From Thalia democratica (taxonomy: Eukaryota), in assembly GCA_965202585.1 (NCBI GenBank), contig OZ241827.1, positions 64,170,001 through 64,234,000 on the forward strand: 64,000 nucleotides of DNA, read 5' to 3'. The translations under genes were made by a program, and so were the position numbers. This document shows positions 12,670-37,613 of this stretch, piece by piece. The first letter of the stretch is position 1. The number at the start of each line of letters is the position of its first letter. The notes beneath the pieces were generated by a model, which worked only from the letters and a program-made list of their open reading frames with translations, had not been told where the DNA came from and did not search any database.

Positions 12670-14830
12670 TAACACCTGGTAAGACGTATGCGGTAGAAAG
12701 TGAAGATCTTTAAAGAAGAAGATCATGTGGCTGCAGAAAAACACGAAACATACGGGTTAAAAACTAGACGCACACCTAAGCCGATCCATTATACACAGGT
12801 ACTTGAAGAATATCTAATCAAAATGATGCAAAAAATGCAGTTCAGTAAGAGCAGCTAGCAACCGTTTCTAACATTAACTACTGAAGATTGTGCGGGATAT
12901 AAATTGAAATTTTTGGTTGTACATTCGGATAAAACTTTTAACTTTAACGACATTTCAGTGAGTGAGTATGAAAATTATCAAACGACAATATAACTAGAGG
13001 TTACAAAAAATGTACTGATAAAACTTTCAAAGATATTAATCTAGAGGCTAAAAATAAATGAAACAATTAACAAAATCTTTTTTAAAAAGCATACATAACG
13101 GTCAATGACCATAAAGAAAACTTCATGCCATATCTCAAGTGTAGATTAATCTACACTTCTATGGTCGATATTAAAGGTTAAGATTGACTGCATTAATATA
13201 GCTGTGCGTTTAAAGTCTAGACTTATACAATAGACTGATACAAACCAAGTCTTAAATTGGTTCACTGGTTTGGAAAAACCAAAAGTAAAACTTTTTTAAG
13301 TTTGATGTAGTCGACTTTTATTCTTTATCAGCGAAGAATTAGTAATCGTTAAATTTCGCTGATAACTATACAAGCGTACCTACTGAAGACTTAAGTCTAA
13401 AAAAAACACATGTAAGTCAGTACTTTATGTACAAGGAAATCCGTGCCGAAAGAATAAAGCTCTGTTTTAGATGTAGCACAGCGATCGTTTATGGGGCAGA
13501 ATTATACGAATTAGTAAGACTTTTAAATTACACGGGATAAAAATCTCTTCTGTCCCACAGATTCAAAATTTACGTTGAATGTAACTTAATCCGAACAAAA
13601 ATTTTGGATATTAACATGAATTTAAGCAGTAATACTTTAGCACATTAGAAAAAGGAAAACTTTGATGTAAAATACATAATAATGGGTCTAATCGCCCCAA
13701 AACAATAAGAAAAGCCTTAAGTCCAATTATTTATAATAGATTATACAAACTTTCTAGCAACAAAGAGATATTTGATATCATTAAAAAAGATTATAACGAA
13801 GCACTAGTTTCAAGTGGACATTACAACCTAAAAGACTATGACAAAAATGACCTGAACTGTAACAGTAAGAAAAAAAAAGATCAAGAAAAATCATATATTT
13901 TAACCTTCCATTTGTAATTATGCAAAAACTAATATAAGTAAGAAACTCTTGGATTTTGTTAGCCAAAATTTTCCTAAAAAACAAACAAATTTCATAATAT
14001 TTTTAACAAGAATACAATTAAAATCTCGTATAGCTGTCTGCCCTATATAAGAAATATTATCAATTCACACAACAAAAAGATTTTAGAGGCTGAAAACAAA
14101 AGAAATAGAACTCGCAACTGTAGAAATAAAATGAATTGCCCGTTTAACGTTAAATACCTTGTAAAAGAAGTATATAAAGCAAAAGTTGTAGACAAAGAAT
14201 ACATTGGTTCTACAGAAAACTCATTTAAAAAAAGGCGGCAGTAACACAAGCACAGCAATAATTTTTTTTAATAACGGTTATTGCCAAATTTATTACATCA
14301 AACAGTATAGATTCTCCGAAATCAAAGGGCAAATATTATTTAAAATTAACTGCTCAGTTCCCAGAAAAACCGACGATTGTACTATATGCAACCTAGAAAG
14401 AACGGACATTGCTAAATCGAACAGAGATAAAGCTCTTAATGAAAGAAAAAAACTAACATCGGTATGCCCCCACTTCAGAACTAGTTATTTTTAGCGTTAT
14501 TTTTAGTTTTTTTTTATTTATTGTTGTTGTTTTTGTTTATCATACCATATTAAGTTTCATCTATTTTTTCTTTGTATTGCTAGCAATTTGTTTATAAGTA
14601 CTTTTCATTTATATTTGATTTGAAGATTTTTTTTGCTTAGTTTTATAATACAGTTAACTAATTAACTTCCCTTGTATTTGCTAAAGTACGTAATTACTAA
14701 TTGATTCATAACTAATTATTTCTAATTACCTAACCTCATTATATATATTTGTGAGTTTCACTTCATTTTATTGTCATTTTGAAAAAACTCTGAAGACACT
14801 AGATGAAACGGTGTAAGCTTAAACTGACAA
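12670..14830 (+). mobile_element. Degenerate Penelope-like retroelement (RT plus GIY-YIG endonuclease remnants)
   Basis: HLVRRMR...KIFKEEDHVAAEKHETYGLKT N-terminal block; NCRNKMNCP...VYKAKVVDKEYIGST GIY-YIG block; CTICNLER...LNERKKLTSVCPH C-terminus; many stops and frameshifts. Confidence 0.85.
14784..14820 (+). ncRNA. Degenerate minimal hammerhead-ribozyme-like motif in PLE 3' region (C3:G8 core)
   Basis: AAACT-CTGAAGA-CACTAGAT-GAAAC-GGT-GTA-AGCTT: core boxes present, stem I 4/5 paired, stem II poorly paired. Confidence 0.4.
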
Positions 14831-15130
14831 TTGTTGAATTAATTATATTTAATAGTGCTAACAGAACAACTTAACATCTTTTATAGATTACTATAGTGTG
14901 AAGTTTTGGTTTTTTTAATTTTTTTAAAATTTATATAAAGTTAGCTATAAAAATAAAATTATACTAGTATGGAAATTAAAGAAAGCGTAATTCCTCGTAA
15001 TACTACTCCGACAATAATTTGTACTTAACACAAAACTAGTAAGTAAAAAAGACACAACAGTGTTTAATATGAAATTTATTAATATAATACCCTATAGTCT
15101 ATAATAATTTTTTTAATAAATTTAAGAGTC

Positions 15131-15811
15131 CTATTTATCTTCGAAATCTTCGCAGCACTCCATATCGACCAGCATGTCACGGACCTTCTTCATTTCCTCG
15201 CAATCTTCTCCTGCGCCTTCTCCGTGTTCTTCAGTAGGTTTCTTCAGGAGCGATGTCAACCTTTCTTTGATTTCCTTTTCCAATACAACTTCTGTTTTAA
15301 ACTCTTTCAAACCAATTTTCTCAATTCCGTCTCTTGCCACTTCGTCATCTGGTATATCTTCAATCCAAACCGTCAGATGTGTGAAGAGCTCTGAAAACGT
15401 GCGAATCGTGTCCTTGTGAGTTTTCCAGCTGGAAGCAAGTACTATAAGCAAGCTTTCATCGTCAACGGCTTTCAGCTTGGGCAAAACATTTAGCACGACA
15501 TGTCTGTGCACTTCTTCCACGAACATGTCGTACATTTCTTCGCCCTTTTGGTGATGAATGCAGTCGTACGAGTTACGGAACAAGTTGTCGTCGCCTTCAG
15601 TGAACTGCATGTCTGAAAAGTTGTTTTCCAAGTGATGCCTCGTACCCCGTCTCAAGCTGTTGATCACTCTTTCATGCCTGAGATCTTGATACTTTCTAAG
15701 CTCAGGATACCAGAACTTTTCGTTGAAAGATTTGAGGCAACCCTTGTTGAAAATGATGTCAGCGAGCTCTTCATCCGAGCAAACTTGGTAAACGTCGTTT
15801 AAATCTTCCAT
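15131..15811 (-). CDS. Truncated Cullin-3-like protein (N-terminal cullin-repeat region only), 226 aa, copy A
   Basis: NLFRNSYDCIHHQKGEEMYDMFVEEVHRHV...LASSWKTHKDTIRTFSELFTHL...IEKIGLKEFKTEVV...KVRDMLVDM aligns by eye to Cul3 [30 protein letters not shown]...[22 protein letters not shown]...VYNLGLIIFRDQVV...NACQMLMIL. CDS is uninterrupted; a TTTTACAG acceptor lies about 18 nt upstream of the ATG. Confidence 0.75.
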   Translation of the reverse strand: MEDLNDVYQVCSDEELADIIFNKGCLKSFNEKFWYPELRKYQDLRHERVINSLRRGTRHHLENNFSDMQFTEGDDNLFRNSYDCIHHQKGEEMYDMFVEEVHRHVVLNVLPKLKAVDDESLLIVLASSWKTHKDTIRTFSELFTHLTVWIEDIPDDEVARDGIEKIGLKEFKTEVVLEKEIKERLTSLLKKPTEEHGEGAGEDCEEMKKVRDMLVDMECCEDFEDK

Positions 15812-15917
15812 TTTTTAACTAAACTATCTGTAAAATGAATAAAATTTAAAATGCTAAACAATTAAGTAATTATTTTATTTCTTACACAGAAAGAACAATT
15901 AATTAAGAATCATTTTA

Positions 15918-16706
15918 CATGGTTGCCACTGATCAAGCTGAGAAAAATTTCCTGACTTTTCTTGACTTTTTACCAAATTTTTCCTGACTTTTCTAATTCA
16001 AACTCTTAAATTAAACTTATTTTAAAATACATAATCTAAAACTTAAAACCATATAAAGCTTTCAATCTAATTTTATTACAGGATAAAATCAACAGATTTT
16101 GCTTAATTCTATCAAACTTCAAGTACATCACTTAAATCATCTGTGTATGATTCATGTTTGTAATAAACAGCTCTATCAGCAAAATACTTGTATTTTCACC
16201 TTATAAACACAGCTTGTTTGAAAAAAGACACAATTTCTTAGCATTTCCTAGCATAAATATATCTAGATAAACAAATGATATTTAAGGAACTTTTAAAATT
16301 TTTGTCTATATCACAGTTTCACTATGGAAGTGTCCTTGCAACACATCATCAATACTAAAAAGCTTACAAAATCTGCTTGTTCAATATGTTAATAAAAAAT
16401 TTTTGCAGTTTTATAAAGGATATTTTACTAATTTTTACCAGGTGAAGGAATTGGAAATAAAATTAAATATTTTTGTTAATTTTCAGGAAAATTTTGGAAT
16501 TTTTTTCGGACTTTAAAAAACTTTTAATCAATTTTTACGATTTGAAGGCTTTGAAAAACAGGGAATTTTGTAAATTTAAAGTGACAACGTCTGAATATAT
16601 TTTTAATTTTATGAAATGTCCTGACTTTTCCTGACTTTTGTCATTAAAAAAAAATTTTCCTCGTTTTTCCTGATTTCCTGACTTTTCCTGACCGAGTGGC
16701 AACCCC
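15918..16706. mobile_element. MITE with (CAT)GGTTGCCACT terminal inverted repeats, present in left palindrome arm only
   Basis: GGTTGCCACT at 15921 and AGTGGCAACC at 16695-16704; CCTGACTTTT subterminal motifs at both ends; CATTTTA on both flanks (15911-15917, 16707-16713). Confidence 0.7.
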
Positions 16707-19700
16707 CATTTTATCATTGTAATTTTTACTTGAAAGTTTACATAATATTTAATAACAGTATCTGAAATTTTTGATTTTAACTAAACTATCTGTAAAATAA
16801 ATAAAATTCAAAATATTTAATAGTTTAGTAATTATATGTTTTGTGTAACCGAAGGAGCGATCAATAAAGAACCATATTATCATTATAATTAATACTGAGA
16901 GAATTACTAAAAATTCAATAACTATACAATCCTAGAAATTTCCTATCTTTTTTTGTAAAAAGTTTACATCTATTATAATCCAATTGTGCTTAAAGGAACT
17001 ACACAAGGAAAATATTTTTTTTACATAAGTCGAACAAAAATTTTGTACCATAACTCCTAAAACTGTTTGTTATGATATACTAACCTTTATTTTTTAATAC
17101 GAATATTTATTAGCTCCAAAATTGTAAATACAAAACAAATATTTAAAAACAAACTACTTGAGTATAATTTTTTACAATAACTTTAAATGTTTACAATTGA
17201 GGTTAGTTAAACTGTATTGCAACTAATAAAAAGTTGTATATGATACATTTATGTGTTAAATCAATATTTTATTGCAATAAACGTACTAAACTTTAAACTC
17301 TAAGTTTTTCTTTTTTTTTTAAGTAATTTTTGTTAAATTCTTGGTTTTTCCAGGTATTATTCAAAATGTCCCAAATTCCAGTTTATTTTTCTAAATTTAA
17401 CAAATTCCAGGTTTTTTGGAAATTGTGTAAATTGTGAAAATATTTAAACTTTAAACTAATAATTTTAAAAACCTTACAACTTTTATATGAATTTCAATTT
17501 ATTTGTTTAATAAATTTAACAGGATTGCTACTGTTCAAAAACAAAAATAAATTTCCTGTGTCATCATGAGTATTTTCAAAAACTTTCATTTGCTTTTTAA
17601 GTATAAAAAAATTATTCTTCAACAATACTAGACATCAAATAACAAAATATTGCAATTTAATGAAGTAAATTTTACTTTAAAGATTTATTAAAACTGTCTT
17701 GAGATTCATAAAAAATCTTTAAATTATGCTTTTTTTTAAAAAAACAAAAATTTATTGCGTCAGCCTGGGCCTAAGAATTAAATTCATAACACCCTCAGTT
17801 GTTTTAAGATTTTTAAAAACTTCAAGATATGCTTAGTTATCATGAGTGTGTGGCAACCCTATTTCAATAGTGCTTCTTCTCAAAATTGTCTGATTCAAGG
17901 GCATATGAGAGAGAAGTAAGGACTTTATTTAAGTAATATTGGTTTAAAATGAACAGGGTTGCTATTTTATTTTGGAAAATTTTTTCCATGTTTGCAAAAT
18001 GTGTTACAGTTTTTTTAAATTACACGTTTTAGGGTCTATAGGAGGTTTAAAATTAAGTTTAATGTAAAAATGACTGTGTTAAGTAGTATAACAGCATTGA
18101 AGAGATACTGTACAGCTACTCTAAAAGTGTTTATCAATAAAAAAAAAATTATGATGACAAAAGTTTTACATATGATGAGATTTTTGTGTCAATTTAAAGT
18201 TTTACTACTTACAGTTAAAACTTGTTTTGAAATTTCAGTTTCTTTTACTAAGTTCTGTTTAAAACTCTATTTTTATTTTCAAAATTTTTAACATTACAAG
18301 TTTTTTCCAAATCTTTTTTAGCTTAAATTGTCAAATTTAAGGATATCAGCTTTTTGGCAACCCTGATTAATTATTACAGTATAAATTAGGGTTTTCTACA
18401 ATCAGTACTTTCAAAATAATCATATAGCTAGCAAAAATTTATAAAATAGTTTAGTTCTAAAAAAAAACATTAGGTTGTTTGTATAAATATTAAAGAGAAA
18501 AAATGGCATTATTCTGTATTAAAGTATTAAATATCCAGAAATTTTGTTTACATTTAATTGTGTTTAATAAATCTCTAACCGATAAAGAAATCTCTGCTAT
18601 AACATAATTGTTTTAAACCAACAATGATTTCATTAAAATGATCTTTCTGCTCAGTGTTAGAAATAAATAACTAACAAAACTGATTATTTTTAACTTGTAT
18701 TTTATTTTTTTTTTACAGTAAGGGAATGAAAACTACATTGGCTTTTGTAAAAATCAATGTAAAAGGTTTGTATTAAATGATAAAACAAAAAATCAAGCTA
18801 TCTAAAAGGTAAAAAAGACTAATCATTAGCTGAGAAAAACTTTTAGTAAGTTACCTTAAGGTGGGCTAACAAAAAAGAATAAATATATAGTCATTCTAGT
18901 TGAATTATTTATACCTTGATGTAATAGTAGAATTCCAGGTTTCTTATTTAATTTTTTTTAGTCTCAAAACTTTTAAAAAGGTTTTAACTGCGCGGACGAA
19001 ATTTTAACAAAATACTAACTTTTTTTTAGAGATTTTAGACATTTACTGAAAATATATCTTATTCATATTAATATCAATTAAAAAAAAGGTTCAAAAACTA
19101 CCAGTTGGTGTTTCAATTTTTTTTATGAAGTTAAGTTGAAGTAAAAATTTATTTAATGATGTGGTTTTAATAAAAAAAAAGATATTAAAAATAACTTATA
19201 TATATGATAGATTTTTTGTGTTTAATCCAAATTTTATTACTTGAAACTTAAAAAATTTGTAGATGTCCAGGTTTTCCAGATTTTTAAGTAATTCTAGTGA
19301 AAAAAATTTTATTCTTTATAGGCTCTTTTTTTTAAATGTTTGACATCACAGGTTTTTTCAGATTAACAAATTCCAGGGTGCTTGTTTTTTGGCAACTCTG
19401 TAAATTGTGAACATTTTTGAACTATAAACACAGGCAGATGAGCTTTCAATATAATTATAACTAATATTTTAAACGTTTCTATTGATTTAAATTATTATTT
19501 TTTTATGGGTTTGAGGAAAAAAAAGCAGTCCTTAGTTAAAAGAATTTAAAAAAAAGTTATTTGCTTTTTAACTATAAAAACCTAATTCTACAACAATATT
19601 AGATATCAAATAACCAACTATTGCAACTATATGAATTAAATCTTAATTCAATAAGATATAAAAACTGTCTTAGATTTATTAAAATTCTTAAAACTATCAT

Positions 19701-22700
19701 GAGTTTTTTGTTTAAAAAAAAATATATCGAGTCAGCCTGGCCTTAAGAAATAAATTCATAAGACTCTGAGTTGTCTTAAGATTTTTACAAACTACAAAAC
19801 ATACTGAGTTATCGTGAGTGTGTGGCAAACCTGTTTCAAAAATACTTTTTCTTAAACTTGGTTTTTTAAGGGTACAGAAGAGAGGAGTAGGTACTTTTAA
19901 GTAGTATTTGTAAAGAATCATTACTGTATAAACCAGGGTTTCTAGAAATAGGCACTTATAGAATTTTACCATATCACTAATAAAAGATTATTAAAATAGT
20001 TTTGTACTTAAAATGTTAATATTTACTTGTTTGTATAAATAATATTTTGTTTTAAATAATATATTTGGTTATTAGAAAAAAAAAAAATTAGCAATTGAAA
20101 TCAGGTTCTCAAAAGTACCATTTTTTTGTCTATTTTTTATATAAACTTAAGTTTGAGGTAAAAAATCATCTTCAATGTAAATTAAAATAAACTTAAACAA
20201 ATTAGTGTAAACTTTAGCATATTTAAAAACTAGAATTATATAAATTTACCTGTACGTACAAAAGAAAAGTTACTTTGGTAAATAGAAAAAAAAAGTAGAA
20301 ATTTCTGTAAATCTTTCACACCTTTTTTAATGTTGCCCAACTTGTAATCTTGTAAATGTTAAAAAAAAATAGACTTTTTTATTACTGCTCTTAACTAAAT
20401 GGTCTTTTTAATGGAAATATGTAGAAGACACTACACAATTCTAGAATGGTCTGAGAAAGCAAAATATAATGTATTTTTTATAGCCTGTAAAGTTCATATT
20501 TTACAAATACCATCTATAATCCAATACTGCCTTATGACGTTGTAATCATTGTTTCAAATATTAATACTACGTCAATGAAAAAATTCATAAATTTTTTTTA
20601 ACATCTTAAAACACTTACAAAGATTTATATCTGAGTTTTGGAAATAACGAGTTTTGAACATTGAATAATAATTATTTTAACTTATATTTTATGCTCAAGT
20701 AATTTTGTGGTGAATTTGAAAAGAAACCTGGCAACTATGCTGACGATGTTGTCAACAAAATTGCAATTTTTGAATCAGCAAGTCGCTACGACTACACAAA
20801 TTTTACAGTTTAATTTAAAAAAAACAAGCGCTTACTAAGTATTCAGAAATAATTTGCTATTAAAGTTCTGGCAACTCGTATATTGTCCTAAATAACTTAC
20901 TGAACTATTTATAATTTTTCGTTTTGTATCTTCTTTAAATGCTGACAACTAAGGATAGGCCACATATTTAGACACAAAAAGTTATTAAGAATGAACATAA
21001 ACTTCATTATTCAACAAAAAAAAATAATTTCAACCTCGAGTAAATATGAGTGATTTTGTTCTATAAGAATAGCAATAGTACTTCGAATTGTAGCTTAAAA
21101 AAAACTAAATGGCAATATTAAATATTCTAAACGAAAACTGTTATATAACTTTCAATAATTGGTTAATTTTGAAATTCTAGTTAAAAACGTAGATGATAAA
21201 AATCAACTCCTTATGAACAACAATGAACAAAATGAAGAAGCTTTTACAGATTTGAAAACAATTCTGTAGGATGGAAAAAAATTTAAAATAAAATAATTTA
21301 CTTTAACTTAATTGCTATTTTTTTTACTTCAATTAGTAAAAAACGCATATTGTTTGGTATAACAATTTATAAAGAGTTTAAATTGATTTTAAAAATTCAT
21401 TTTCTGCTTAATTTAAACTTATTTTTTTGTCAGCCTTGTGGTTATACTACTATTTGTTTGCAGCGTCAGATGTCAACAGTCTTTTTACTTAGAATCATAA
21501 CTGAGAATATAGAATGAAACATAAGAATTATTTTTTGAACATTCTTTTAGTTTTATCATTGTATCTTCACATTTGTTTGAAAATATTTCAATTCAAAGCT
21601 GATTTTTTTTATAACGAAAATAAAAGTTTCAAGTATTTTTAGATTCTTTGACGCCTGACAACTGTGGTCTTCCTGAAAAACTTCTCAACGGATTCGAGAC
21701 GACTGAGACCAAAGTAACTTCCTACTACAGCTACAGAGAACGTCAGTTTAACTAACCACAGATAACTTTGTTTAACTAACTTAAAACGTAATCGGACTAT
21801 TTCAAAAACAGAACATGATTTAATTAGGAGCAATATCAACGCTGTACTGCTCACAATCTTGGAACTAAGTTTAACCTTCTCTACAGAAAAAAAAGAGGAT
21901 AAAAAAAGTGTATTTTCTAAACATAAACAAATTGTGAAGCTTAAAAATGTTCAAAAATCTATTGCCATTTGATTTTTAATTCGAGTTTTAAAGATAAGTG
22001 AACACTAATACACTTTTTGTATAATATTTTAAAAGCTACATTTGAACATTTAACATCTTATAAAGAATAACTAAAACAAACTATTTTTACAGAAAGATGC
22101 GACGCCCCTGTGGCGCAAGTAAACGGATCAAAACAACTTGTGGTTTTTACAATGGAGCTGCTGTTCCTACTTTCAATAAACTCCTGTGCCCTGTTAGTAC
22201 AGTGCCAATGTATCTTAGGAAATCTTTTGTTTTTTAAATAGTCTTTTTTTGTTGTGGTGAAAGTGTTCAAAAATGAAGTATCTGAAATTATTTTGCAAAT
22301 ACGAGCACGTTTTGCTAAAAAAAAATATAAATAAATTTTTAAACTAAATTTCAGGAGTTATTGTAAAGTTAATCTTTACAGTCAGAATATTGTAAGTGTT
22401 TTTTACACTATCAAACGTATCATGTAACGAAGAAATCATTGTTAAGAGCGCTTTGCGACGCTCTAGCCGCCCCTGATAATGAAAACATCGGTTGTGAGAG
22501 CAGTGTGTTGTTGGCTGGTGTTATCTAGCTGTAATGAAAGTAAATTAAACAATATTAATAAGCAACAAAATGTATCTTAATCTAAAAATCTAAATACTTT
22601 TAATAAGTAAACATTAAATTTACTAAAGCTTAGTTAGGCCTATTTTAGTTATTTCCTTTTTTTTTGATTATAGATAAAAATTAAATAATTGTAAAGAATG

Positions 22701-25700
22701 ATAAAACTTACAATTAAAACACAATTTTATACTCTGTGTAAAGCACCTCTTGCACCAGAAATTAATGAAATTTTTGACAAGAAGAACTTGTTATTGGAAG
22801 GAATACTAGCCATTCAGATTGTAACGTTGGTTAGTAAGATTTTGTTTTATTTTTTGTTAGAAAACTAATATCATATATCTAATAAAGAACGTTAAATAGA
22901 AACTACAGAAATCTTTACTTAGTTTGTGAAGCCGTAAAAACTAAATCCTTAAAACATGTCTTAAAACCAATAAAAGCAAATAAAGATTATTTTTTTGTTT
23001 TCAGAATGCAGCCTTGTTGGAAACACAGATACTGGTTATACTGCTATTGATTGATAAAAGTTTTCTGAATTTAATAACCTGTGTATATGTCAGATACTTT
23101 TTTAAAATGTAAAAATCTATAAACCTTCGTTGTAGTGTATTAAATATATCTTATGTCTTTAGAGTTAAAGTTTAATCTTATGTTTTTGTAAACTCAATGA
23201 TTAAGTAGAATTTAAATAAGTGTAACAAAACTTTTATTTCCACAAAATTACTTAAGCATGAAATTTCAAGTTAAAATAAATAATTTTTTTTCATTATTCA
23301 AATTTCTTTATTTCCGAAATTCAGAAATAACTTTTTGTAAGTATTTAAAAAAAACGTTAAAACAAATTTATAAACTTTTACGTTGACTTAATATTTAAAA
23401 CAAAGATTAAAATGTCATGAGACAATATTGGACCATATATGGTATTTGTATTAATTAAACAGTACAGCTACAATCTATGTAAAGTATTAATATTATGTTA
23501 TATCTTTTGCTATTTTTCTTACCATCAGGAAATTTCTAGTGTTTTTTACATATTCCCATTAAAAAGACCATTTTGTTTATAGCAAAATTATAGAAAAAAA
23601 ATTCTAAGCTTTTATTAAGTTTCTGCAAGTTTACAAGTCAGGCAACAAAAAAAGGTGTGAAAGTTTTTACAAGTATTAGTACTTTTTATTTTCTATTTAC
23701 CAAAGTAACTTTTCTTTTGTTTGTACAGGTAAGTTTTAAATAAATTTAGTGGTTAGATTAGGTTTACACTATTGTGTTAAAACAGTACTTGTGAAGATAA
23801 ACTTTTGTTTTAGACACAAAAACTGGAACTTTTAAAAGTCTGATTTTAATTGCTAAAAAAATAAAAATTAATATTTTATAATATCTAAATACAATATTTA
23901 TAAAACAAATATTATAAGCTAAACTTTTTTTTAAGTGCTAAATTATTTAATTTTTTTATTTTAAAATTTTGTTAGTTATATGGTAATACTTAAAAATACC
24001 TATTTTGGGAACCCTGGTTTATACTGTAAGAGTTCATTTTAAATGTTATTTAAAGAGAGTCCCTAATACTCTGCAATGCCCGAATATATGGCTAATTTGA
24101 GAGGAAGTATTATTGAAACTTGGTTGCCACACACTCAGAAGTCAGGATAGCTCAGTATATTTTTAATTTTGTAAAAGTCTTAAAACAATTGAGGGTATTA
24201 TGAATTTATTTTTAGGCCCAGGCTGACTTAGTACAGTTATGTTTAATAAAAAACAATTCAGAATAGTTTTAAAACTAAACTTTTTTTAAAATCTCAGGGA
24301 ATTTTTTATATATCAGTAAAATAAGATTTACTTTATTTAGGTTCAATATATTGTTATTTTATAATCAACTTTGTTGAAGAATTAAGTTTTAATAGTTAAA
24401 AAGCGAAAAAAAATATCAGGATGACTTAGGAGTTTAGGACTATTTATTTTTTGACTCAAACAGTGGCAACTTAGTTTAAAATATGAATTTAAATCAATAG
24501 GAAAGTTTAAAGTTATAAGTTTACAAATACATTTGTAACTTAATTGCCTGTGTTTAGAATTCTAATATTTTCACAAATTACAGGGATGGCAAAAGACCTG
24601 GAGCCCTGGAATTTGTTTTAGTCTGAAAATCCTGTAATATCAAACATTAAAAAAAAAGTTAGAAAGACTATTATTTTTTAACAAAAGTTATTTAAAAAAC
24701 TAGAAAACCTGGAATTCTAAACAATTTCTAAGTTTTAAGTAAAAACAATTGTTTAGACACAAAAAATCTATCATATAAATAAATAATTTTTGATGTATTT
24801 ATTTTTGTTTTCTTAAAAAGACATTGAAAGATAAATCTTCACTAAAACTTAACTTTATACAAAAGATTGAAACACAAACTGGTAGTTTTTAGAACCTTAT
24901 TTTAAATTGCTAAAAAAATTAATAAGATATGTTTACAGTAAATATCTTAAGAACCTAAAAAATAAGGTACTATTTTGTTAAAGTTTAGTCCGCGCGGACA
25001 ATATATTTAAAAAAATTTTTGCACAAAAAAAATTAAATAAGAAACCTGGAATTTCTACAATACATCAACGTATAAAAAAGTTGCACTATTAAAGAAATTC
25101 GACTATTTATTCTTATTTTTTAGCCCAACCTTAAGGTAACTTACTAAAAGTTTATTCCAGCTAATGATTAGTCTTTTTTCTTATTAGGTAGTTTGGTTTT
25201 TTATTTTATCATTAAATACACATCTTTTACATTGACATATTCAAAAGCCAATGTAGTTTCATCCACTTACTGCATAATAAATCAAAAAAATAATGAGTTT
25301 TGTTAGTTACTTATTTCTAACATAGAGCAGAAAGATCATTTTAAAGAAACTCATCTTATTTTAAAAGAATCATATTATAGCAAAGATTTATTTAACAGTT
25401 AGAGAAAAATATTAACAAAATTTCTGGATATTAAATAATTAATAAATGAATAATACCATAACTTTCTCCATAACATTTATAAAACAAGTCAATGTTTTTT
25501 TTTCAGGGTTAAATTATTTTGATAAATTTTTGTTGTCTATATGGTAACCTTCTGAAAGTACTGATTTTAGAGTTCCCTGATTTATACTGTAATAACTCAT
25601 TCAGGGTTGCCAAAAAACTGTTAGCCAGGAATTTGACAATTTATGCTAAAAAAGCTGGTAAAAGCTGATATTTAAGAAATTTTGAAAAAAAAACTGGAGT

Positions 25701-27189
25701 TTTAAACAAAATTCAGTTAAAGAAACTGAAAGTTTAAAACAAGTTTTAAATGTTAAGTAGTAAAATTTTGAATAGACACAAAGATCTCATCATATATAAA
25801 CTTTTTGTCATCATCAATATTTTTTTACTGAAAAACACTTTTAAAGTAGCTGTACAGTATCTCTTCAAAGCTGTTATACAACTTAACACAGTCTTTTTTA
25901 CATTAAACTTAATTTTAAACTTCCAATAGACCCTAAAACGTGTAATTTAAAAAAAAAACTGTAACTTATTTTGCAAACCTGAAGAAAATTTTCCAAAAAA
26001 AGTTTGCAACCTTGTTTATTTTAAACCAATATTAGATAATTAAAGTCCTTACTTCTCTCTCATATACCCTTGAATCAGACAAATTTGAGAAGAAGCACTA
26101 TTGAAACAGGGTTGCCACACACTCATGATAACTCAGCATATTTTGAAGGTTTTAAATATCTTAAAACAACTGAGTGTGTTATGAATTTTTTTTCTTAGGC
26201 CCAGGCTGACTCAGTACAGTTTTGTTTTTTTTTTCAAAAAAAAGGTAGTTTAAAGACTTTTTATAAATCTCAGAACAGTTTTTATTACTTTTTGAAGTAA
26301 AATCTGCTTAATTTAATTGCACTGTTTTGTTATTTAAAATCTAATATTGTTGAAAAATTAGGTACATCTATATAAAAAACAATAAAAGATTTTGAAAATA
26401 CTTATGTGACTCAGAACATTTATATTTGACTTAAACAGTGACAATCCTGTAGAAAATATGAATTTAAATCAATATAAAATTTGTAAGGTTTTTAAAATTA
26501 TTTGTTTAAAATTTAAATATTTTCACAACTTACACGGTTTCCAAAAAACCTGGAACTTGTTAATTTAGGAATAATAAACTGGAGTTTGGGACATTTTGAA
26601 TAACACCTGGAAAAACCAAGAGACTCTAATAAAAGAAAATCTTTTCAACTTTAATTTTTTAATATTTTAATTTTAAACAGTTGGTACACTTAATGCAATA
26701 AAATATTGACTTAACACATAAATGTATTATATCAATTTTTTATAATTGCAATACAGTTTAACTAACCTAAATTGTAAACATTTAGAGTTAAGGTAACAAC
26801 TCAAGTAGGTTGTTTTTAAATGTTTTTTTGTATTTAGAATTTTGAAACTAATAAATGTTAGTATTTAAAAATACAAATTAGTACATAATTAACAAACAGT
26901 TTTAGGAGTTATATTTAAAAATTTTCGTTTTACTTATATAAAAAAACATTTTCTTTATGTAATTCCTTTGCATTATATATTTGCATTTTAATACATGTAA
27001 ATTTTTTGCATAAAAACAAAGGAGTTTTCTATAAATATATTTATATAGTTTTTAGTAAATCTCTAAGTATTAATTATAGTGATAATATGGTTCTTTATTG
27101 ATTGCTCCTCCAGTTAAACAAAACATATAATTACTAACCTATTAAATAATTTGAATTTATTCATTTTACAGATAGTTTATCTAAAAATA

Positions 27190-27873
27190 ATGGCAGATCC
27201 AAACGACAAAAAGTACCAAAGTTGCTCGGATGAAGAGTTTTATGACATTGTTTTCAATAAGGGATGCCTTGATAGTTTCAACGAAAAGTACTGGTATCCT
27301 CAGCTTAGAAAGTATCAAGACTTCAGGCATGAAAGAGTGATTAACAGCTTGAGACGGGGTACAAGGCATCACTTGGAAAAAAACTTTTCAGACATGCAGT
27401 TCGCTGAAGGCGAAGACAACATGTGGTACAATTCGTACGACTGCACACACCACCAAAAAGGCGATGAAATGTACGATATGTTTGTGGAAGAAGTGCACAG
27501 ACATGTCGTGCTAAATGTTTTGCCCAAGCTGAAAGCCGTTGATGATGAGAACTTACTTGGTGTACTTGCTTCCAGCTGGAAAACTCACATGGACACAATT
27601 AGCACGTTTTCAAAGCTCTTCGAGCATCTGACGCTTTGGATTGAAACAGTTCCAGAGGATGAAAAGCCAAGAGACGGAATTAAGAAAATAGGTATGAAAA
27701 AGTTTAAAACAGAAGTTGTATTGAATGAGGAAGTCAAAGAAAGGTTGACATCGCTCCTGAAGAAACCTACTGAAGAACACGGAGAAGACGCAGGTGAAGG
27801 ATGGGAGGAGATAAAAGAGGTCTATGATATGCTGGTCGATGTGTATTGCTGCGAAGATTTTGAAAATAAATAG
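27190..27873 (+). CDS. Truncated Cullin-3-like protein, 227 aa, copy B (about 79% aa identity to copy A by manual count)
   Basis: Intact ORF from ATG 27190 (MADPNDKKYQSC...), preceded by a TTCATTTTACAG acceptor; colinear with copy A over its full length. Confidence 0.75.
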   Translation: MADPNDKKYQSCSDEEFYDIVFNKGCLDSFNEKYWYPQLRKYQDFRHERVINSLRRGTRHHLEKNFSDMQFAEGEDNMWYNSYDCTHHQKGDEMYDMFVEEVHRHVVLNVLPKLKAVDDENLLGVLASSWKTHMDTISTFSKLFEHLTLWIETVPEDEKPRDGIKKIGMKKFKTEVVLNEEVKERLTSLLKKPTEEHGEDAGEGWEEIKEVYDMLVDVYCCEDFENK

Positions 27874-29637
27874 AGTTGTTTAATATATATAAGTAGTCAT
27901 GTAGACCATAGGGTATTATGTTAATAAATTTCGTATTAAACGCTGTTGTGGTTTTTTATACTAACTAATTTTGTGTTTAGTACAAGTTATTGTTTGAGTA
28001 GTATTACGAGGAATTACTCTTTCCTTAAATTCCATACCAATTCAAATACATTTTTATTGCTAACTCTACATAAGAATTTTTTAAATATTATCAAAAAAAA
28101 AACAATATTTGACAGTACAGTAATCTATAAAAATTATTAAGTTGTTAGTTAGCCCTTATTGTTTTGTTTATATCAAAAAATTTACTGTTGCGATATAAAA
28201 ACAAAGTAAAAAGCTCTTCAAGTAGGCTCTATAGAAGGAGGTTTAGTCTATCTAGTTACAATATTTTCTATATACATATAGTTTATTTTGAAAATTGGAA
28301 TTAAACAAGATGATATGTTTCATAAAAAAAAGTTTTTAATCGTTAAATGTAGTTTTTTTTTAAATTACACAGAATAAGAAATTAAACGAATTTAGTTGCA
28401 CTTTGCTAAATATTAATACAAAGGTTATATAAAAAACATTGACGTAATTACTAAATGTTGCAGAGGACAAATTCCTAGATTAAAATTTAATCTTTCTTCT
28501 AAACCAGGGTTTTTCAAACTTTTTTTTTAAATTTCACCATAAAAGAAATCAAAAAGCGATGGCCCTCTTCAACAAGATTACTCAAAAAACTAATATAAAA
28601 AACACCTAGCTTATTTTTTTCTTTTACTTTTAAATATCAACTCCAGATTGGAGTTTAAATTCCAAAACTACCATCCAAAACACCTAGAACCTTTAATTTT
28701 GCTTTTCATCATCGACTCCAGAATAACTATTGTGAATTTTAATTTATGACCTCGTGACCTTCTGAATACCTGTCATATTTTTTTAAGACTGTGCACTTTT
28801 TATCACCTTTTAAGTTGTATTTAAATAAATGTTTGTGTGGTTAAGTTACAAACTTTTCAAAAAGCTCAGTCTCATTTTCACATACACCACTTTTGAAATA
28901 TTTTTATGGTAAGCATACCGGAATCTGAACTGAGCTAAGCATAAGCTGATGTAGAACTTCATCTGAAAGTGAAAGTTAACTATTGCCTTGTAAATAATGT
29001 TTCATGAACGACTTTTGCCCCCTTTAGATCAGCAGCGCAGTTACTTTAGACTATTTTCGTTAAGTATTTTTGTTATGTGTCTTAGTTGATATCTCCAAAT
29101 CAAGCCTACATGAATAACTATTTGCATATTATGTATGTTGAAGATTTTCGATAATAGATAATTATAGGTAAATTTTTCTTTGCTAGATTTATAAACTGTC
29201 TGCCGAAATTTGTATAAACTAAACTAATAAAAGGGGGATTATACCAAATTAAATTTTGTTTTTATTTTATTTTTGTTTTAGTTTTTTGCTTCGTTTTTTC
29301 GAAATTAAGTTTATATTGTAATTAAATTTTTTCATTATTAATTCGTGATGAGTTTTTATCTTAAATTTTTTTTCTACGTTTCTTGATCTTTTATTTAAAC
29401 GTTGATTAATTATATTTGTCAGTTGTTAAACAGTATTTTTGGGTGACTAGAAACTTTATTAATATGAATAATTTTTGCGCTTTGCCTTTTATAAGGCATA
29501 AAGGAAAGACACACAAATTGAGGTAGCCAGTTGTAATCATTGGTTATTTAACGGTCGATCGCAACTCCATAGACTTGAATGAGGCATGCGTGAGTATTAT
29601 TAGCTTTCAACTTTAAAGCCAGAAGAGTTAGGCAGTA

Positions 29638-30650
29638 AAGCTAGACCATCGTTTATGTACAACCAAACTTTTTCTAAATCAAAACTATTTTTTAACCCGT
29701 CTAACAAAAAAAAAGTCCCACTAATTCATATAATTCTCCACCCGTTAACGATCCCTGTGCAATATCAAAAATAGAGAATTGCTTTTTTCTTTTGCCACAG
29801 GTTTCCTTGTTCATAAAGTACTGACCAAAATGTGTTTTATATTGACTTAAGTCTTCAGCAGGTACGCTAGTATAATTATCAGCCAATTTTAGTGATTACT
29901 AACTCTTCGCTGATAAACGGATAAAATCGACTACGTATAACTTAATGTACTTTTGTTTTTCAAAACTAGTGTAACAATTAGAGACTTGGCCCGCATCGGT
30001 CCATGGTCCAAGTTTAAATTTTAAAAGCACAACGTTGTTGACGCAGTCAATCTTTACCTTTAATATTCGACCTACATCAGACATAGAAGCGTTGATTAAT
30101 CTACACTTTAGTTGTGGTAGGAAGTTATACTTATGGTCATTGACCGTTATGTATGTTTTTTTAACGAGATTTTTTTAATTCTGTCATGTATTTTTAGCCT
30201 TCAGACTAATATCTTTAAAAGTTTTGTCAGTACATTTTTTGTGACCATTAGTTATATTGACGTTTAATAAGGTTGATACTCACTCACTGAATTGTCATTG
30301 CAGTCAGAAGTTTTATCCGAAAGTACAACTAAACTTTTAATTTATACCCGCACAATCTTCAGCAGTTGTTAGAAACGGTTGCTAGTTGTTCTTACTGAAC
30401 TCCATTTTTTGCACCATTTTGATTAGATATTCTTTTAAAGCCTGCATATGTTGGATTGGCTTAGGTGTGCGTGTTGTTTTTAATCCTAATGTTTCGTGTT
30501 CTCCTGCAGCCACATGATCTTCTTCTTTAAAGATCTTCGCTCTCCACCGCATACGTCTTACCAGGTGTTGAGTATTTTGTATCAGTGCTTCCTTATATGC
30601 ATCTTGTTTAGCACACATGATAGTTCTTGGTATAGTGCTTGATTTTATAC
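29638..30650 (-). mobile_element. Degenerate Penelope-like RT fragment, same family as 12670-14830
   Basis: HLVRRMRWRAKIFKEEDHVAAGEHETLGLKT nearly matches the 12670 copy; GGELYELVGL and LYINDGLA (decayed LYRDDGL) RT motifs. Confidence 0.8.
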
Positions 30651-33660: not shown

Positions 33661-34956
33661 TGTAGGACACTTGTGCAAAATCTTATTTTGCCTTGTGTCC
33701 AAATTTTTATAATTTAAAGGAATTAATGTTTTTCACTTGATATTATATTTTTTCCTTAAAAAAGAAAACATTGAATAAATATAGTAAAACTGTTTTCCGA
33801 AAAAAAAAACTATTTTTCACAAACAAAATAAGTGCTAGTTAAAATGATTGTTGTCTTTGATTTCTTGATTAAACTGGAAATTGCTGTTCATGGGTGTGGC
33901 TAAGAGAAAATGAGAGAATAAAATGAGAGATCAAGTGATCTACAGTCCAAAGTCCAGGAAAATGAGAGAATCAAATGAGAGATTGCGTGATTTATAGAAA
34001 ATTCTAGAAAAAGAATTCAAAATCTATAAATACGCCCGATCAGAGCATGAAGCGGGCAATCCACCACGAAACAAGCAAGAAGCGACACTCTGCTCCGCAA
34101 AAGAAATAACATCGTCAATAAACAAGCAAGATGATTTCAACAACCATCTAATCGAAGAAGCCCACGCATTCTGTGGCATCGAGAATTTCAGTACTGGAAG
34201 TACTCTTTCATCAAACACTCTAAGTTGGACTCCACGATCGAGTCACAGCGTTCAATCAAGTTTAAGTATACAATCATCTCAGCAAGTAAACCCACACAGA
34301 CTGGGCGCCAACCTTAGCTACACTTCAACGAACAAGTTGTTTTCATACTGTTTGATTCTATCGTATTGTTTATATATTCATATTATCATATATACTCACT
34401 ATTGTATTTGCATTGTAATATTTATATATATTTATATCACCGCATTTATTCACTATTGTATTTGTATTGTAATAATTATACATATTGATATCATCGTGCT
34501 TATTTATTATCGTATTTTATCGCCCGCTCTGCTTACGGAAAGGAAAGGAAAACAGACCACGCTACGTTTAGCAAGATTCTGCAAACGAGACGGACCAACG
34601 TCGAGTGCCAGAAGCTGAGCGAACGGAGACCAGTGACACGCCAAAGGGGGAATCCGGAGCGCGTTTCCTTCTATTTGTTAACATTAAGTGTCTAAACTTA
34701 TTGTGAGCTGTCATTGCGTATTTGTACATAATAAACCAAAATTATTTAGTTTCATTATATTTAGTTAAATAATTATATCATTATGTCCTTAAAACCCTTA
34801 AAAAAGGCATTAGTCCTGAAGGCACCCAGAACTCGGTCCAGAACCGAGATAAGTTGTTCCGAGACTACTGCTAACCTGGAATCCGATGAGATTGTTGAGA
34901 CTGAAACCGAGGCAATTGCGAAGGAAACCAGTGAGGCTCCTAGTCTGGGTAACAAT
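33661..34956 (+). repeat. 5' LTR (1296 bp, TGTAGG...GGTAACAAT)
   Basis: Matches 46097-47392 with only four substitutions noticed and no net indel; TATAAA at 34025-34030; AATAAA at 34730-34735; internal AAATGAGAGA repeats at about 33905-33985. Confidence 0.95.
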
Positions 34957-37596
34957 AATGGCGTCCTCCGAAGCGAACATCCGCCGACCACAGAAGACAA
35001 CACTAAAAAAATTATCGAATTAACTAAATTAGTAGAAAATAGTAACAAACTAATAGAAGATAGATTTAATACTATTTTAAAAACAATTTCTATACAGAAT
35101 TCTCAATCATCGAATATCCCTACAAATACCGAGGTAAGTACAATAAATAATCTTAACCCACATATAAATTTAACAGATCCTGAAAAAATACGACCAACAA
35201 TGACAACAGAGGCGGTATCGACATTACCTACCAACAAAATCCAGACACCAATTCCATTATCAAGCCATGCGTCCAAATCTTGCACAATACCAAGCAATTA
35301 CAATTCAATTTTAAACGTTGACCATTCAAACGAAAGAAATGGAATTCAACCACATGATAATAACCAGTCGATTGCACAGTTACAAAGGCAAATTGACAAC
35401 CTCCAGAAGACAATAAACCAAAATCCTATCCACGAACGTATAACAACCCAACCTAACACCAACCACATTTTTGGCAACCACGATCCGATACCCAGAAATC
35501 AACACTTCCAGCAAACAGTTAATTCGAGGCTATCAAATAGCATTTCTGATAAAGCATTCAGAAAAATTTCAGGGGAAAGACCAAGAGAGGAGTTAAGCCT
35601 CTTCGAGGTTCAATGTAAAAGCCAAGGAACTTTTGATGATCAAACACAATTTCAGATTATTATCGGAATCTGGCCAATTAATGACGTACTTTCTTATGTA
35701 AAAGCTGGCAAACCATCTAGTTATATCTGTTTTAAACAAGAAATCTTAAGTATGACCCCATGTTTGCCAGACATACTTAAACCTCCACCTATCTGGAGCA
35801 GCACTCCAACCTTTAAAGATATCCATCAACTAATATCAAAAGGTCTTACATGCTCTCAAGATGACCTTTACAAACATTTGGCACTGATTTATTGCCCGAA
35901 ATGGGCTAGTAACATTCTAAAAAAAGACCTTGAATTACAAATTGATAAGTTCAAAGGTCGGGTTATGTGGACTCTTGAACAAGGCCCAATTGATTTGAAA
36001 ACAAATTACAACAATAGAAAATCAAACAACCAGTATAATTTTAATGACAAATTTCACAACGCATTCAACCAACAACAAAACCAAAACTTTTCAAATTATA
36101 ACCAGAACAGATACAATCAAGCACAAAACTATAGACCAAATCTAAACCAGTTTGATAATAAAAATAATAACAGGTGTAGTTATCACGTTAGGTTCGGTGA
36201 AAAATCCAATAATTGTGAAGGCCAACAATGCGATATGTACCAAAAATTTTTAGAGAAAAAATTAAGCTTTCTCAAAAATAAACCTGCAGCAGTTAACATG
36301 TCAATAATACAAGATATTTCGAATGCTGAACAAAGTAAAAATTCCACTCAAGACAAACCAGCAAACAGTAATAAAGTAGATGAATGCATTACTAACGACA
36401 GAAATAATGAGGAAATTAAACAAGAAACAAACGAAATAGATGATAAATTCATTAAAAGGAAATTGCCTTATGAAACAAAACTAAAAAACAATACTGAACT
36501 ATTAATAATTGCCGACAATGAAACCTCTGTACAATATCTTTTTGATACTGGTGCAGAAGTTTCGATCATACCCAAATCCATGGTTGACACATATGAAAAG
36601 GACAAGTCAACGCCTAATATATGCGACATAAATGGCAAAACATCTAAAGCATTAGGTTATTCAATGAAGTACGTTAAAATTGGCCTGAAACCGGACCTGC
36701 CACATTCTTTCTACGTAATAGACACAGATATTCCTTTTGCAATTCTAGGGTTAGATTTCATAATTAAACATAAATTAACAATAATACCACAAGAGAAAAC
36801 TATCGTACAAGGTGATTCAGGAGTTAAACTGAAATTAAAACAGCTAACTACTCCTGAAACAAAAATGAAAATAGAAGTAGAAAATCTCCTAAATCTTTTT
36901 CCTGAAATCGACAAAGAACCAAACTACAAAGAAAAGCCCAAGCACAACCATGTCTTAGATATAAAACTTGAAAAAGAATTTTCACCCCGACACCAAAGAG
37001 CAAGGAAAACTAACAAAACTATTTCAAAGGAAATAGAAGATAATTTTGATAAATTACTCAAACAAGGGGCGGTAATAAGAGGCATTTCTGAAATAGTCTC
37101 ACCTTTAACTGTAGTCAGAAAAAAGAATGGAAAGCCAAGGGTATGTGAGGATTACCAATATATTAACCAATGCACTAAAATAATGAGCTACCCTTTACCA
37201 AATATTGACGATCTTTCTTCTATTATACCAGTCAACTCTAAAGTTTTTTCAACACTCGACCTGAGAGAAGCATATTTGAATCTTCCCTTAACTTACCGAG
37301 CACAAAAAGTAGCAGCCATGATTTCTCAATATGGCACATTTTTGCCGTTAAGAACAACCTTCGGCCTTAAGAATGCCCCAATGGCATTCCAAAGGCTTAT
37401 GGATGACATAATGGCTCCATGCCATAATTTCAGCTTTACATACATAGATGACATTATAATTTATTCGAAATCAATGGAAGAACACATGCAACATCTGTTT
37501 GAAGTATTGTTTCAACTTAACAAATTTGGATTGCATAACAATAGGAAAAATGTAAATTCGCCGCTGAAGAAGTTCAATACCTTGGACACATACTGA
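34783..37596 (+). CDS. gag-pol: Gag-protease-reverse transcriptase polyprotein (single frame; frameshifted near end of RT)
   Basis: CSYHVRFGEKSNNCEGQQC Gag CHCC-type motif; YLFDTGAEVSIIP and FAILGLDFI protease motifs; RT motifs PRVCEDY, FSTLDLREAY, FGLKNAPMAFQR, YIDDIII. RT continues in another frame as KCKFAAEEVQYLGHILSSKG from about 37550. Confidence 0.95.
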   Translation: MSLKPLKKALVLKAPRTRSRTEISCSETTANLESDEIVETETEAIAKETSEAPSLGNNNGVLRSEHPPTTEDNTKKIIELTKLVENSNKLIEDRFNTILKTISIQNSQSSNIPTNTEVSTINNLNPHINLTDPEKIRPTMTTEAVSTLPTNKIQTPIPLSSHASKSCTIPSNYNSILNVDHSNERNGIQPHDNNQSIAQLQRQIDNLQKTINQNPIHERITTQPNTNHIFGNHDPIPRNQHFQQTVNSRLSNSISDKAFRKISGERPREELSLFEVQCKSQGTFDDQTQFQIIIGIWPINDVLSYVKAGKPSSYICFKQEILSMTPCLPDILKPPPIWSSTPTFKDIHQLISKGLTCSQDDLYKHLALIYCPKWASNILKKDLELQIDKFKGRVMWTLEQGPIDLKTNYNNRKSNNQYNFNDKFHNAFNQQQNQNFSNYNQNRYNQAQNYRPNLNQFDNKNNNRCSYHVRFGEKSNNCEGQQCDMYQKFLEKKLSFLKNKPAAVNMSIIQDISNAEQSKNSTQDKPANSNKVDECITNDRNNEEIKQETNEIDDKFIKRKLPYETKLKNNTELLIIADNETSVQYLFDTGAEVSIIPKSMVDTYEKDKSTPNICDINGKTSKALGYSMKYVKIGLKPDLPHSFYVIDTDIPFAILGLDFIIKHKLTIIPQEKTIVQGDSGVKLKLKQLTTPETKMKIEVENLLNLFPEIDKEPNYKEKPKHNHVLDIKLEKEFSPRHQRARKTNKTISKEIEDNFDKLLKQGAVIRGISEIVSPLTVVRKKNGKPRVCEDYQYINQCTKIMSYPLPNIDDLSSIIPVNSKVFSTLDLREAYLNLPLTYRAQKVAAMISQYGTFLPLRTTFGLKNAPMAFQRLMDDIMAPCHNFSFTYIDDIIIYSKSMEEHMQHLFEVLFQLNKFGLHNNRKNVNSPLKKFNTLDTY
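34959..34976 (+). promoter_or_regulatory. Putative primer-binding site TGGCGTCCTCCGAAGCGA
   Basis: TGG (complement of tRNA CCA) starts 2 nt after the LTR end. The first 8 nt, TGGCGTCC, match the complement of a typical tRNA-Asn 3' end; tRNA identity is not established. Confidence 0.65.
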
Positions 37597-37613
37597 GTAG
37601 CAAAGGTTTCTAT

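Follow-up and report, generated by a model that had tools for sequence, protein, structure and literature searches.

The stretch of Thalia democratica DNA considered here, 64,000 nucleotides long and called the window throughout, spans 64.17-64.23 Mb of chromosome C2 in an AT-rich genome of 802 Mb. Between its positions 15131 and 27873 lie two short open reading frames (ORFs) whose predicted products resemble the N-terminal end of the ubiquitin-ligase scaffold Cul3. ORF1 (15131..15811, minus strand) is a complete single-exon coding sequence of 226 amino acids counted from the ATG, identified by its Pfam match, its structural match and its AlphaFold2 model. ORF2 (27190..27873, plus strand) keeps an intact frame of 227 amino acids and is identified by Pfam and by alignment with its paralogues; the mechanical ORF starts at a TTG at 27151, and it is the ATG at 27190 that aligns with the paralogues' start. 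The two proteins are 79% identical, and no other ORF of at least 100 amino acids occurs in any frame between 14000 and 29000. GC content is 44% in ORF1 and 41% in ORF2, against 24-29% in the flanks, and GC content at third codon positions (GC3) is 0.53 and 0.47, respectively. Frames that stay open over such a length in DNA this AT-rich are far beyond chance. An earlier note on this DNA, made from the letters alone, had described two intact ORFs of 226 and 227 amino acids with coding-like composition; the coordinates, the open frames and the GC and GC3 values agree with that description.

Both proteins match the Pfam Cullin family (PF00888), with scores of 47.6 and 40.4 bits against a curated cut-off of 33.2, over profile positions 4-162 of 620 only. 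In a single-sequence search of solved structures the best match was Cul3 (E 8e-4) and the relatives were all cullins; a 16-sequence family profile gave Cul3 at E 6e-18 and Cul4A at E 2e-6. The AlphaFold2 model, built on the family alignment, has a predicted local distance difference test (pLDDT) score of 88.8 and a predicted template modelling (pTM) score of 0.84. Foldseek ranked Cul3 N-terminal domains from BTB complexes first, and VIA-align superposed model residues 41-226 on residues 25-208 of human Cul3 with Z 18.5-20 and a root-mean-square deviation of 2.1-2.4 Å. In ORF1, residues 1-40 thus form an N-terminal extension peculiar to the family, which is followed by cullin repeat 1 and the initial helices of repeat 2. 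The ORF proteins end inside repeat 2, at a point corresponding to human Cul3 residue ~208, and therefore contain neither repeat 3 nor the cullin-homology/Rbx1 region nor the neddylation domain. Pfam searches found the neddylation domain (WH-B, PF10557) in neither ORF, and coverage of neither extends past profile position 162 into the Rbx1-binding cullin-homology domain. The profile limits and the superposition, a comparison with the Cul3 N-terminal domain that the earlier note had itself proposed, bear out its claim that only N-terminal cullin repeats are present, ending before the C-terminal regions. The cullin assignment, which the note had staked on a profile match, also stands, as both ORFs score above the Pfam Cullin cut-off.

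It is highly improbable that each ORF is just the initial coding exon of a longer cullin gene, with further exons missed downstream. The parent genes, the full-length relatives described below, are single uninterrupted ORFs without introns, and a tblastn search of the whole 64 kb window with three of them found nothing past residue 227 (best E 0.9). Downstream of the short loci, no cullin sequence was found within ~1.4 kb of any of them and no cullin residues past 229; with the parent search of the window and of all short loci empty, downstream exons were rejected. There is no GT between the last conserved codons and the stop, and the stop itself is conserved. Six members of the clade of short genes that includes ORF1 and ORF2 (clade A) end at the same codon (...DMLVDMECCE[DE]FE[DE]K and stop), and metagenome relatives stop 2-4 codons later. 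The 80-90 nt past the stop are conserved among the clade-A paralogues and the metagenome locus L037, with AATAAA, ~15 nt, AAACGCTGTTGTG and a T-run, although synonymous divergence (dS) from that relative is 0.7-0.9. In the window this 3' untranslated block lies at 15046..15130 (minus strand) after ORF1, where AATAAA at 15075-15080 is followed by AAACACTGTTGTG and a T-run in what is probably a cleavage and polyadenylation region, and at 27874..27957 (plus strand) after ORF2, where AATAAA at 27923-27928 is followed by AAACGCTGTTGTGG and a T-run. Missed exons do have some precedent in the wider family: some 'short cullins' from metagenomes are such artefacts or frameshifted full-length genes (P0035, P0040; P0078/L080), and a more distant short clade keeps a donor-like CAG/GTA at its end. 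For the window ORFs, the uninterrupted parents, the empty window search and the conserved stop and AATAAA agree with the earlier reading of stand-alone genes rather than exons of a longer cullin. ORF1 and ORF2 are thus very probably complete genes of a lineage-specific family that encode only the adaptor-binding N-terminal end of a Cul3-like protein.

The older clade with the donor-like motif (L073, L070-L072 and L081; C6:27.9 Mb, C9:53.4-54.1 Mb and metagenome protein P0079) consists of cullin-N-terminal ORFs of 220-227 amino acids. Their end, ...CYDFxLLxSG, coincides with a donor-like CAG/GTAWT in three genes, of which one comes from another species, and members of this clade may splice to a further exon.

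The two genes also have similar 5' leaders. In that of ORF1 (15812..15873, minus strand) a TATA-like ATAATTACT lies at 15865-15873 and a pyrimidine tract is followed by CAG (15828-15830), 16 nt 5' of the ATG; the leader of ORF2 (27127..27189, plus strand) has ATAATTACT at 27127-27135 and ttcattttaCAG ending at 27171. Because an in-frame TAA stands between the pyrimidine-CAG and the ATG of ORF1, its frame cannot extend upstream. The arrangement, with the ATAATTACT motif ~55-60 nt and a yCAG 16 nt 5' of the ATG, is conserved and common to short and full-length members of the family. It may represent a compact promoter and leader, or a splice or trans-splice acceptor, that was carried along with each duplicate.

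ORF1 and ORF2, which point away from each other, lie in opposite arms of an inverted segmental duplication, defined by collinear inverted matches, and neither arm contains any other gene. The left arm (12671..20575) carries ORF1 and the right arm (23377..30569) ORF2. The matched pairs are non-coding and 71-91% identical, from the outermost (12671-12873/30367-30569) to the innermost (20485-20575/23377-23467). At 15918..16705 there is a repeat of ~790 bp in very high copy number, with a word depth of ~600,000 against ~1,000 in its flanks and loose ends at either limit (15918 and 16705). It was inserted, after the duplication, 107 nt 5' of the ORF1 start codon, and the corresponding position in the ORF2 arm (arm pair 16804-16926/27036-27158) lacks it. 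A second stretch, at 17342-17508, is moderately repeated.

At least 72 matches were obtained when the Cullin profile was run against all six frames of the genome. Four groups can be told apart: a few canonical cullins with multiple exons, several single-exon cullins of 730-780 amino acids with a neddylation domain, a series of genes for proteins of ~680 amino acids, and many fragments. Among full-length relatives the third group is closest to the window ORFs, sharing 57-61% identity with them over residues 1-226. It comprises more than 25 single-exon Cul3-like genes of 678-683 amino acids on chromosome C9 (38.7-48.7 Mb; loci L011-L028 and L049-L067), with one at C2:15.93 Mb (L008/L046). These proteins match Pfam Cullin through its last position and have C-termini reading ...ILLKNPSGNTYSPTDSFTVNQGLDHESDRIYVQMLPKA; the match of such a parent to Cul3 (E 2e-52) is better than those to Cul4 (2e-38) and Cul1 (3e-30). 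The Cullin_Nedd8 domain is absent from them, and no PF10557 match was found near their clusters. The ratio of non-synonymous to synonymous substitution rates (dN/dS) within this family is 0.24-0.43, which marks its members, on codon evidence, as selected neddylation-less cullins. A 758-residue metagenome relative that is 58% identical, P0007, still has the Cullin_Nedd8 domain.

A maximum-likelihood tree built from the N-terminal region joins ORF1 and ORF2 as sisters (support 98/96) inside clade A, which consists of seven genes, all short (100/99), and all on chromosome C2, at 61.8-61.9, 64.18-64.20 and 72.8 Mb. Another short clade joins a gene at C2:25.64 Mb to the metagenome protein P0001 (100/100), and the older short clade includes genes at C6:27.9, C5:13.0 and C9:53.4-54.1 Mb (100/99). 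A very young short copy at C9:48.39 Mb is nested among full-length genes. This copy, L050 (C9:48389905-48390561, minus strand), shares 95.6% identity with the full-length gene next to it as far as residue 229 and ends in GAAAAAAATTTAAAATAG followed by an A-rich stretch, two copies of AAAATAGTAAAA; its homology to the parent begins 94 nt upstream of the ATG.

Outside this genome, an exhaustive HMMER search of 1.84 billion representative sequences returned only 45 proteins at E <=1e-3, and word-indexed protein searches returned 5-8 short relatives, all of them ocean-metagenome proteins. Related sequences come only from ocean-metagenome assemblies, including those of Tara Oceans; none was found among JGI metagenome contigs, and no viral relative was found among IMG/VR viral contigs. 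The survey of related genomes and viruses that the earlier note had proposed thus supplied ocean-metagenome relatives but, in IMG/VR, no viral ones. When neighbouring ORFs were examined for a partner gene at the loci whose sequence was retrieved, only alternative-frame ORFs inside the cullin genes were found. A literature search found no paper on such a short-cullin family.

Nei-Gojobori estimates with codon bootstrap give a dN/dS of 0.42 (confidence interval 0.26-0.68) for ORF1 against ORF2, at dS 0.29. Pairs within clade A range from 0.28 to 0.72, and comparisons of clade A with the metagenome relative P0003 from 0.21 to 0.31; P0003 against P0004 gives 0.36, and the C2:25.64 gene against P0001 gives 0.28. 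Two visibly damaged copies (C2:61.80 and 61.93) give 0.98, which shows that the method is able to see neutrality. When the changes between ORF1 and ORF2 were polarised with three outgroups, the ORF1 branch had 16 synonymous and 19 non-synonymous changes, and neutrality was rejected with p 2e-4 to 6e-3. By this measure ORF1 is clearly constrained. The ORF2 branch had 14 synonymous and 39 non-synonymous changes (p 0.1-0.46 against neutrality), and the probability that its frame stayed open by chance is ~0.09. ORF2 appears to be relaxed or diversifying; its support comes mainly from the intact frame, and taken alone it is not distinguishable from post-duplication drift.

These values bear on the possibility that one or both ORFs are non-functional duplicates in decay, whose frames are still open only on account of the recent duplication. 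Stops or frameshifts interrupt about six further clade-A copies, a pattern that, as read from the sequences, is one of birth and death, and gene turnover of this kind would fit such an origin. So would the behaviour of the ORF2 branch, the repeat inserted just upstream of ORF1, and the surrounding region, which is rich in transposable elements (TEs) and poor in genes. Decay seems improbable, however, given that both frames are intact, that the pairwise dN/dS of 0.42 excludes 1 and that the ORF1 branch is constrained. The clade has five full-length members that are intact at dS 0.3-0.5, damaged copies do reach a dN/dS of ~1, so that neutrality is detectable, and in relatives from another species the frame has been retained along with the intron signals, the stop and the poly(A) signal. 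The intron in question, found in P0003 and P0004, is a canonical, frame-preserving GT-AG phase-1 intron of ~275 nt in the H1-H2 loop (L037:90-370 and L082:1-160); a kept intron would be hard to explain for untranscribed DNA. The window copies and the full-length parents are without it, a difference due either to gain in a related organism or to loss in this genome. Neutral evolution, which the earlier note had named, together with a lack of expression, as fatal to its proposal, is contradicted by purifying selection on the family and on ORF1 but is compatible with the ORF2 branch.

Every short lineage of the family ends within ~10 codons of parent residue 227. The shared end point is the loop after the helix ...CDMLVEMECYEEVFE and matches human Cul3 residue ~208. 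A single origin of all the short forms was considered and rejected. Under the approximately unbiased (AU) test, a grouping of clades A and B that includes the young C9 copy is rejected (p 1e-48), as is one that unites short clades A, B and C (p 0.016, with the groups chosen after the tree had been seen); A with B is not rejected. The short forms would thus have had at least two or three origins, or else have undergone gene conversion. An internal deletion joining the N-terminus to a parental 3' untranslated region was also rejected, the 3' untranslated regions of the full-length genes being unrelated. Retroposition of a prematurely polyadenylated transcript is not supported by L050, which has no target-site duplication and in which homology with the parent continues 5' of the ATG. 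An A-run at the end-point site in some parents is not conserved. One ocean-metagenome full-length relative, which lies just downstream of another full-length cullin, has a 1-nt frameshift (L080:2840-2905; AAT TTC TGA vs AAT TTC TTG A) exactly at the codon that marks the end of the short families; either a sequencing error or a mutational hot spot could explain it. Truncations elsewhere (open frames of 344, 564 and 567 amino acids) are only singletons. We prefer to explain the recurrent boundary by a selective filter, in which only cuts at this position would leave a foldable and useful unit.

The part of the protein that is retained is the part by which Cul3 recognises its partners. In Cul3, the elements of the first repeat that contact BTB adaptors are helix H2, the H1-H2 loop and H5 (PMC3616122), in agreement with the earlier note, which had given adaptor binding as the function of the Cul3 N-terminal domain. 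The best-conserved blocks in short and full-length members of the window family are GTRHHL, NFSD.QF.EGDDNMWYNSYDCTHH (H1-H2 loop and H2) and FSELFxHLTLWIEDVPEDE (H5 region). Aromatic residues are kept at the H2 positions of the Cul3 contacts F54, Y58 and Y62 (contact roles from PMC3616122), where the family has F, W (F in ORF1) and Y, and ORF2 retains the family-consensus H2 helix NMWYNSYDCTHH. As to possible partners, the genome has at least 76 BTB-domain matches, many within single open frames of 430-670 amino acids, so that intronless BTB genes are also numerous. None of these matches lies inside the C9 cullin cluster.

A tentative mechanism can be drawn from these features. ORF1 and ORF2 descend from the expanded intronless family of ~680-residue Cul3-like proteins, and their products would bind the same adaptors as the full-length relatives, of BTB type by homology with Cul3. 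Lacking an Rbx1-binding or neddylation part, the short proteins cannot build a ligase. They keep the partner surface and nothing with which to recruit Rbx1, and therefore, by analogy, should sequester adaptors; these would be held in non-catalytic complexes, and the ligases of the full-length relatives would be tuned or blocked. Cul3 without its Rbx1 site is a dominant negative that inhibits ubiquitination by the Cul3-RING ligase (CRL3) (PMC4447969), consistent with the statement of the earlier note that Cul3 fragments act in a dominant-negative way. The decoy reading is made plausible by the conservation of the adaptor-binding helix region, the best-conserved part of the sequence, and we infer expression of the genes, adaptor binding and an inhibitory effect. 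Competition for adaptors is our leading hypothesis for the function, one that we hold with less than even confidence. The explanation as a whole, a young inverted-duplicate pair of stand-alone, Cul3-derived N-terminal genes whose products compete for adaptors, comes near to an even chance without reaching it.

Several observations, besides the ORF2 branch and the repeat upstream of ORF1, weigh against the competitor mechanism. The residue equivalent to Cul3 L66 is H, Y125 and R128 are not conserved, and four-residue insertions relative to Cul3 are present in the H1-H2 loop and after H5. The adaptor pocket is thus remodelled relative to that of Cul3, and the partner need not be a BTB protein. 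ORF1 has four clustered substitutions in H2 (M77L, W78F, Y79R and T85I), which could reflect a change of specificity or a loss of function. The ~680-residue parents, the putative target of inhibition, themselves have no neddylation domain. A search of public sequencing records turned up no RNA run for this animal; the only three public runs that contain the locus are DNA contigs, which cover the genes and their flanks alike.

The genes might instead be real and selected but serve a role other than adaptor sequestration, such as binding a CAND1-like exchange factor, stabilising or chaperoning an adaptor, or forming a non-degradative complex, which might assemble through the family-specific extension of 40 residues at the N-terminus and the tail. 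Cullin repeat 1 is a contact site of CAND1 as well, and the matches of the model in the Protein Data Bank (PDB) include CAND1-cullin complexes that show this contact. The remodelled pocket would suit another partner, the constraint equals that in the full-length family, and both the N-terminal extension and the acidic, Cys-rich tail DMLVDMECCEDFEDK are conserved within the clade. The natural cullin-repeat protein CACUL1, discussed below, lowered ligase activity without displacing Keap1 from Cul3 (PMC4523873). The best-conserved blocks nevertheless coincide with the H2/H5 adaptor surface common to the full-length relatives, as a competitor would need, and no positive evidence points to a different partner. 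A role of this other kind is possible but rather unlikely, and adaptor competition remains the reading we favour.

The wider evolutionary picture is doubtful: a Cul3-derived scaffold that expanded to dozens of neddylation-less copies in a marine animal would have been cut repeatedly and independently at Cul3 ~208, giving at least two to three persistent families of headless cullins, selected as competitors or tuners and possibly part of a fast-evolving conflict system. The link to immunity or to conflict with TEs or viruses, which the earlier note had suggested, is speculation drawn from the birth-and-death dynamics; no viral homologue was found in IMG/VR, and the retroelement nearby has no relation to the cullin genes.

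Comparison with known proteins places the window family among natural and engineered short cullins. The best sequence relative of the short proteins and of their parents is the human Cul3 N-terminal domain (PDB 4HXI, 4AP2, 4EOZ and 5NLB), which has the same fold over residues 25-208. The window proteins are only ~20% identical to it, end inside repeat 2 without repeat 3, the Rbx1 region or the neddylation part, carry the two four-residue insertions and a different 40-residue N-terminal extension, and are encoded by separate genes. Laboratory dominant-negative Cul3 resembles them in keeping the adaptor end and losing the catalytic end, and such constructs abolish CRL3-dependent ubiquitination (PMC4447969). 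Those constructs, however, are engineered fragments of canonical Cul3, whereas the window proteins are natural, shorter, multi-copy and under selection, and a decoy effect is proposed for them by analogy. Dominant-negative constructs usually retain all three repeats.

A functional precedent in nature is CACUL1/CAC1 (CDK2-associated cullin domain 1; Q86Y37, 369 amino acids), which, like the window proteins, has only a cullin-repeat domain. CACUL1 associates with Cul3 as well as with Keap1, which is a BTB protein, and reduces Nrf2 ubiquitination (PMC4523873). In a fold search of Swiss-Prot models with the AlphaFold2 model, Cul3 orthologues came first, and the CACUL1 cullin domain (residues 130-293) matched at the fold level with 15% identity at rank 15-17. 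CACUL1 is not an orthologue: the window proteins are multi-copy, have no CACUL1 N-terminal region and are 57-61% identical to lineage-specific full-length cullins, and therefore arose independently of it. Arabidopsis thaliana cullin-like protein 3 (Q9XIE8, 255 amino acids) and putative cullin-like protein 2 (Q9XIE9, 374 amino acids) are likewise natural short N-terminal cullin-repeat proteins, and residues 6-189 of Q9XIE8 align with the model (template modelling score by hit, 0.56). They belong to a plant lineage and represent a truncation independent of the window family; a literature search found no functional study of either. The ESM Atlas contains clusters of 'cullin N-terminal' predictions of 167-216 amino acids from fungi, plants and nematodes, many of which may be fragments.

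Natural short cullins are thus already known as a kind, from CACUL1 and Arabidopsis cullin-like protein 3. What is new is the independent, animal, Cul3-derived origin, the multi-copy birth and death, the constraint, the recurrent end point and the parents without a neddylation domain. Control of cullin-RING ligases is usually ascribed to neddylation, CAND1 exchange and adaptor abundance. If the competitor reading is true, the window genes would be a natural counterpart of the laboratory dominant-negative fragments, and scaffold decoys would form an evolvable layer of ligase control. The genome is itself unusual, with more than 25 intronless neddylation-less Cul3-like genes, full-length intronless cullins and several truncated series, and is a good system in which to study how a ligase scaffold family diversifies. 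The short proteins are small, confidently folded in prediction and amenable to direct tests of BTB binding.

Elsewhere in the window, positions 34783-44257 hold the neighbouring retrovirus-like element. It includes an ORF of 937 amino acids with aspartic protease and reverse transcriptase domains and one of 607 amino acids (42434-44257) with weak, sub-cut-off matches to profiles of herpesvirus glycoprotein B and the Monjiviricetes fusion glycoprotein. An ORF of 262 amino acids at 49924-50712 has a GIY-YIG nuclease domain, which scores 29.4 bits where the cut-off is 22.6; this ORF may belong to a mobile element.

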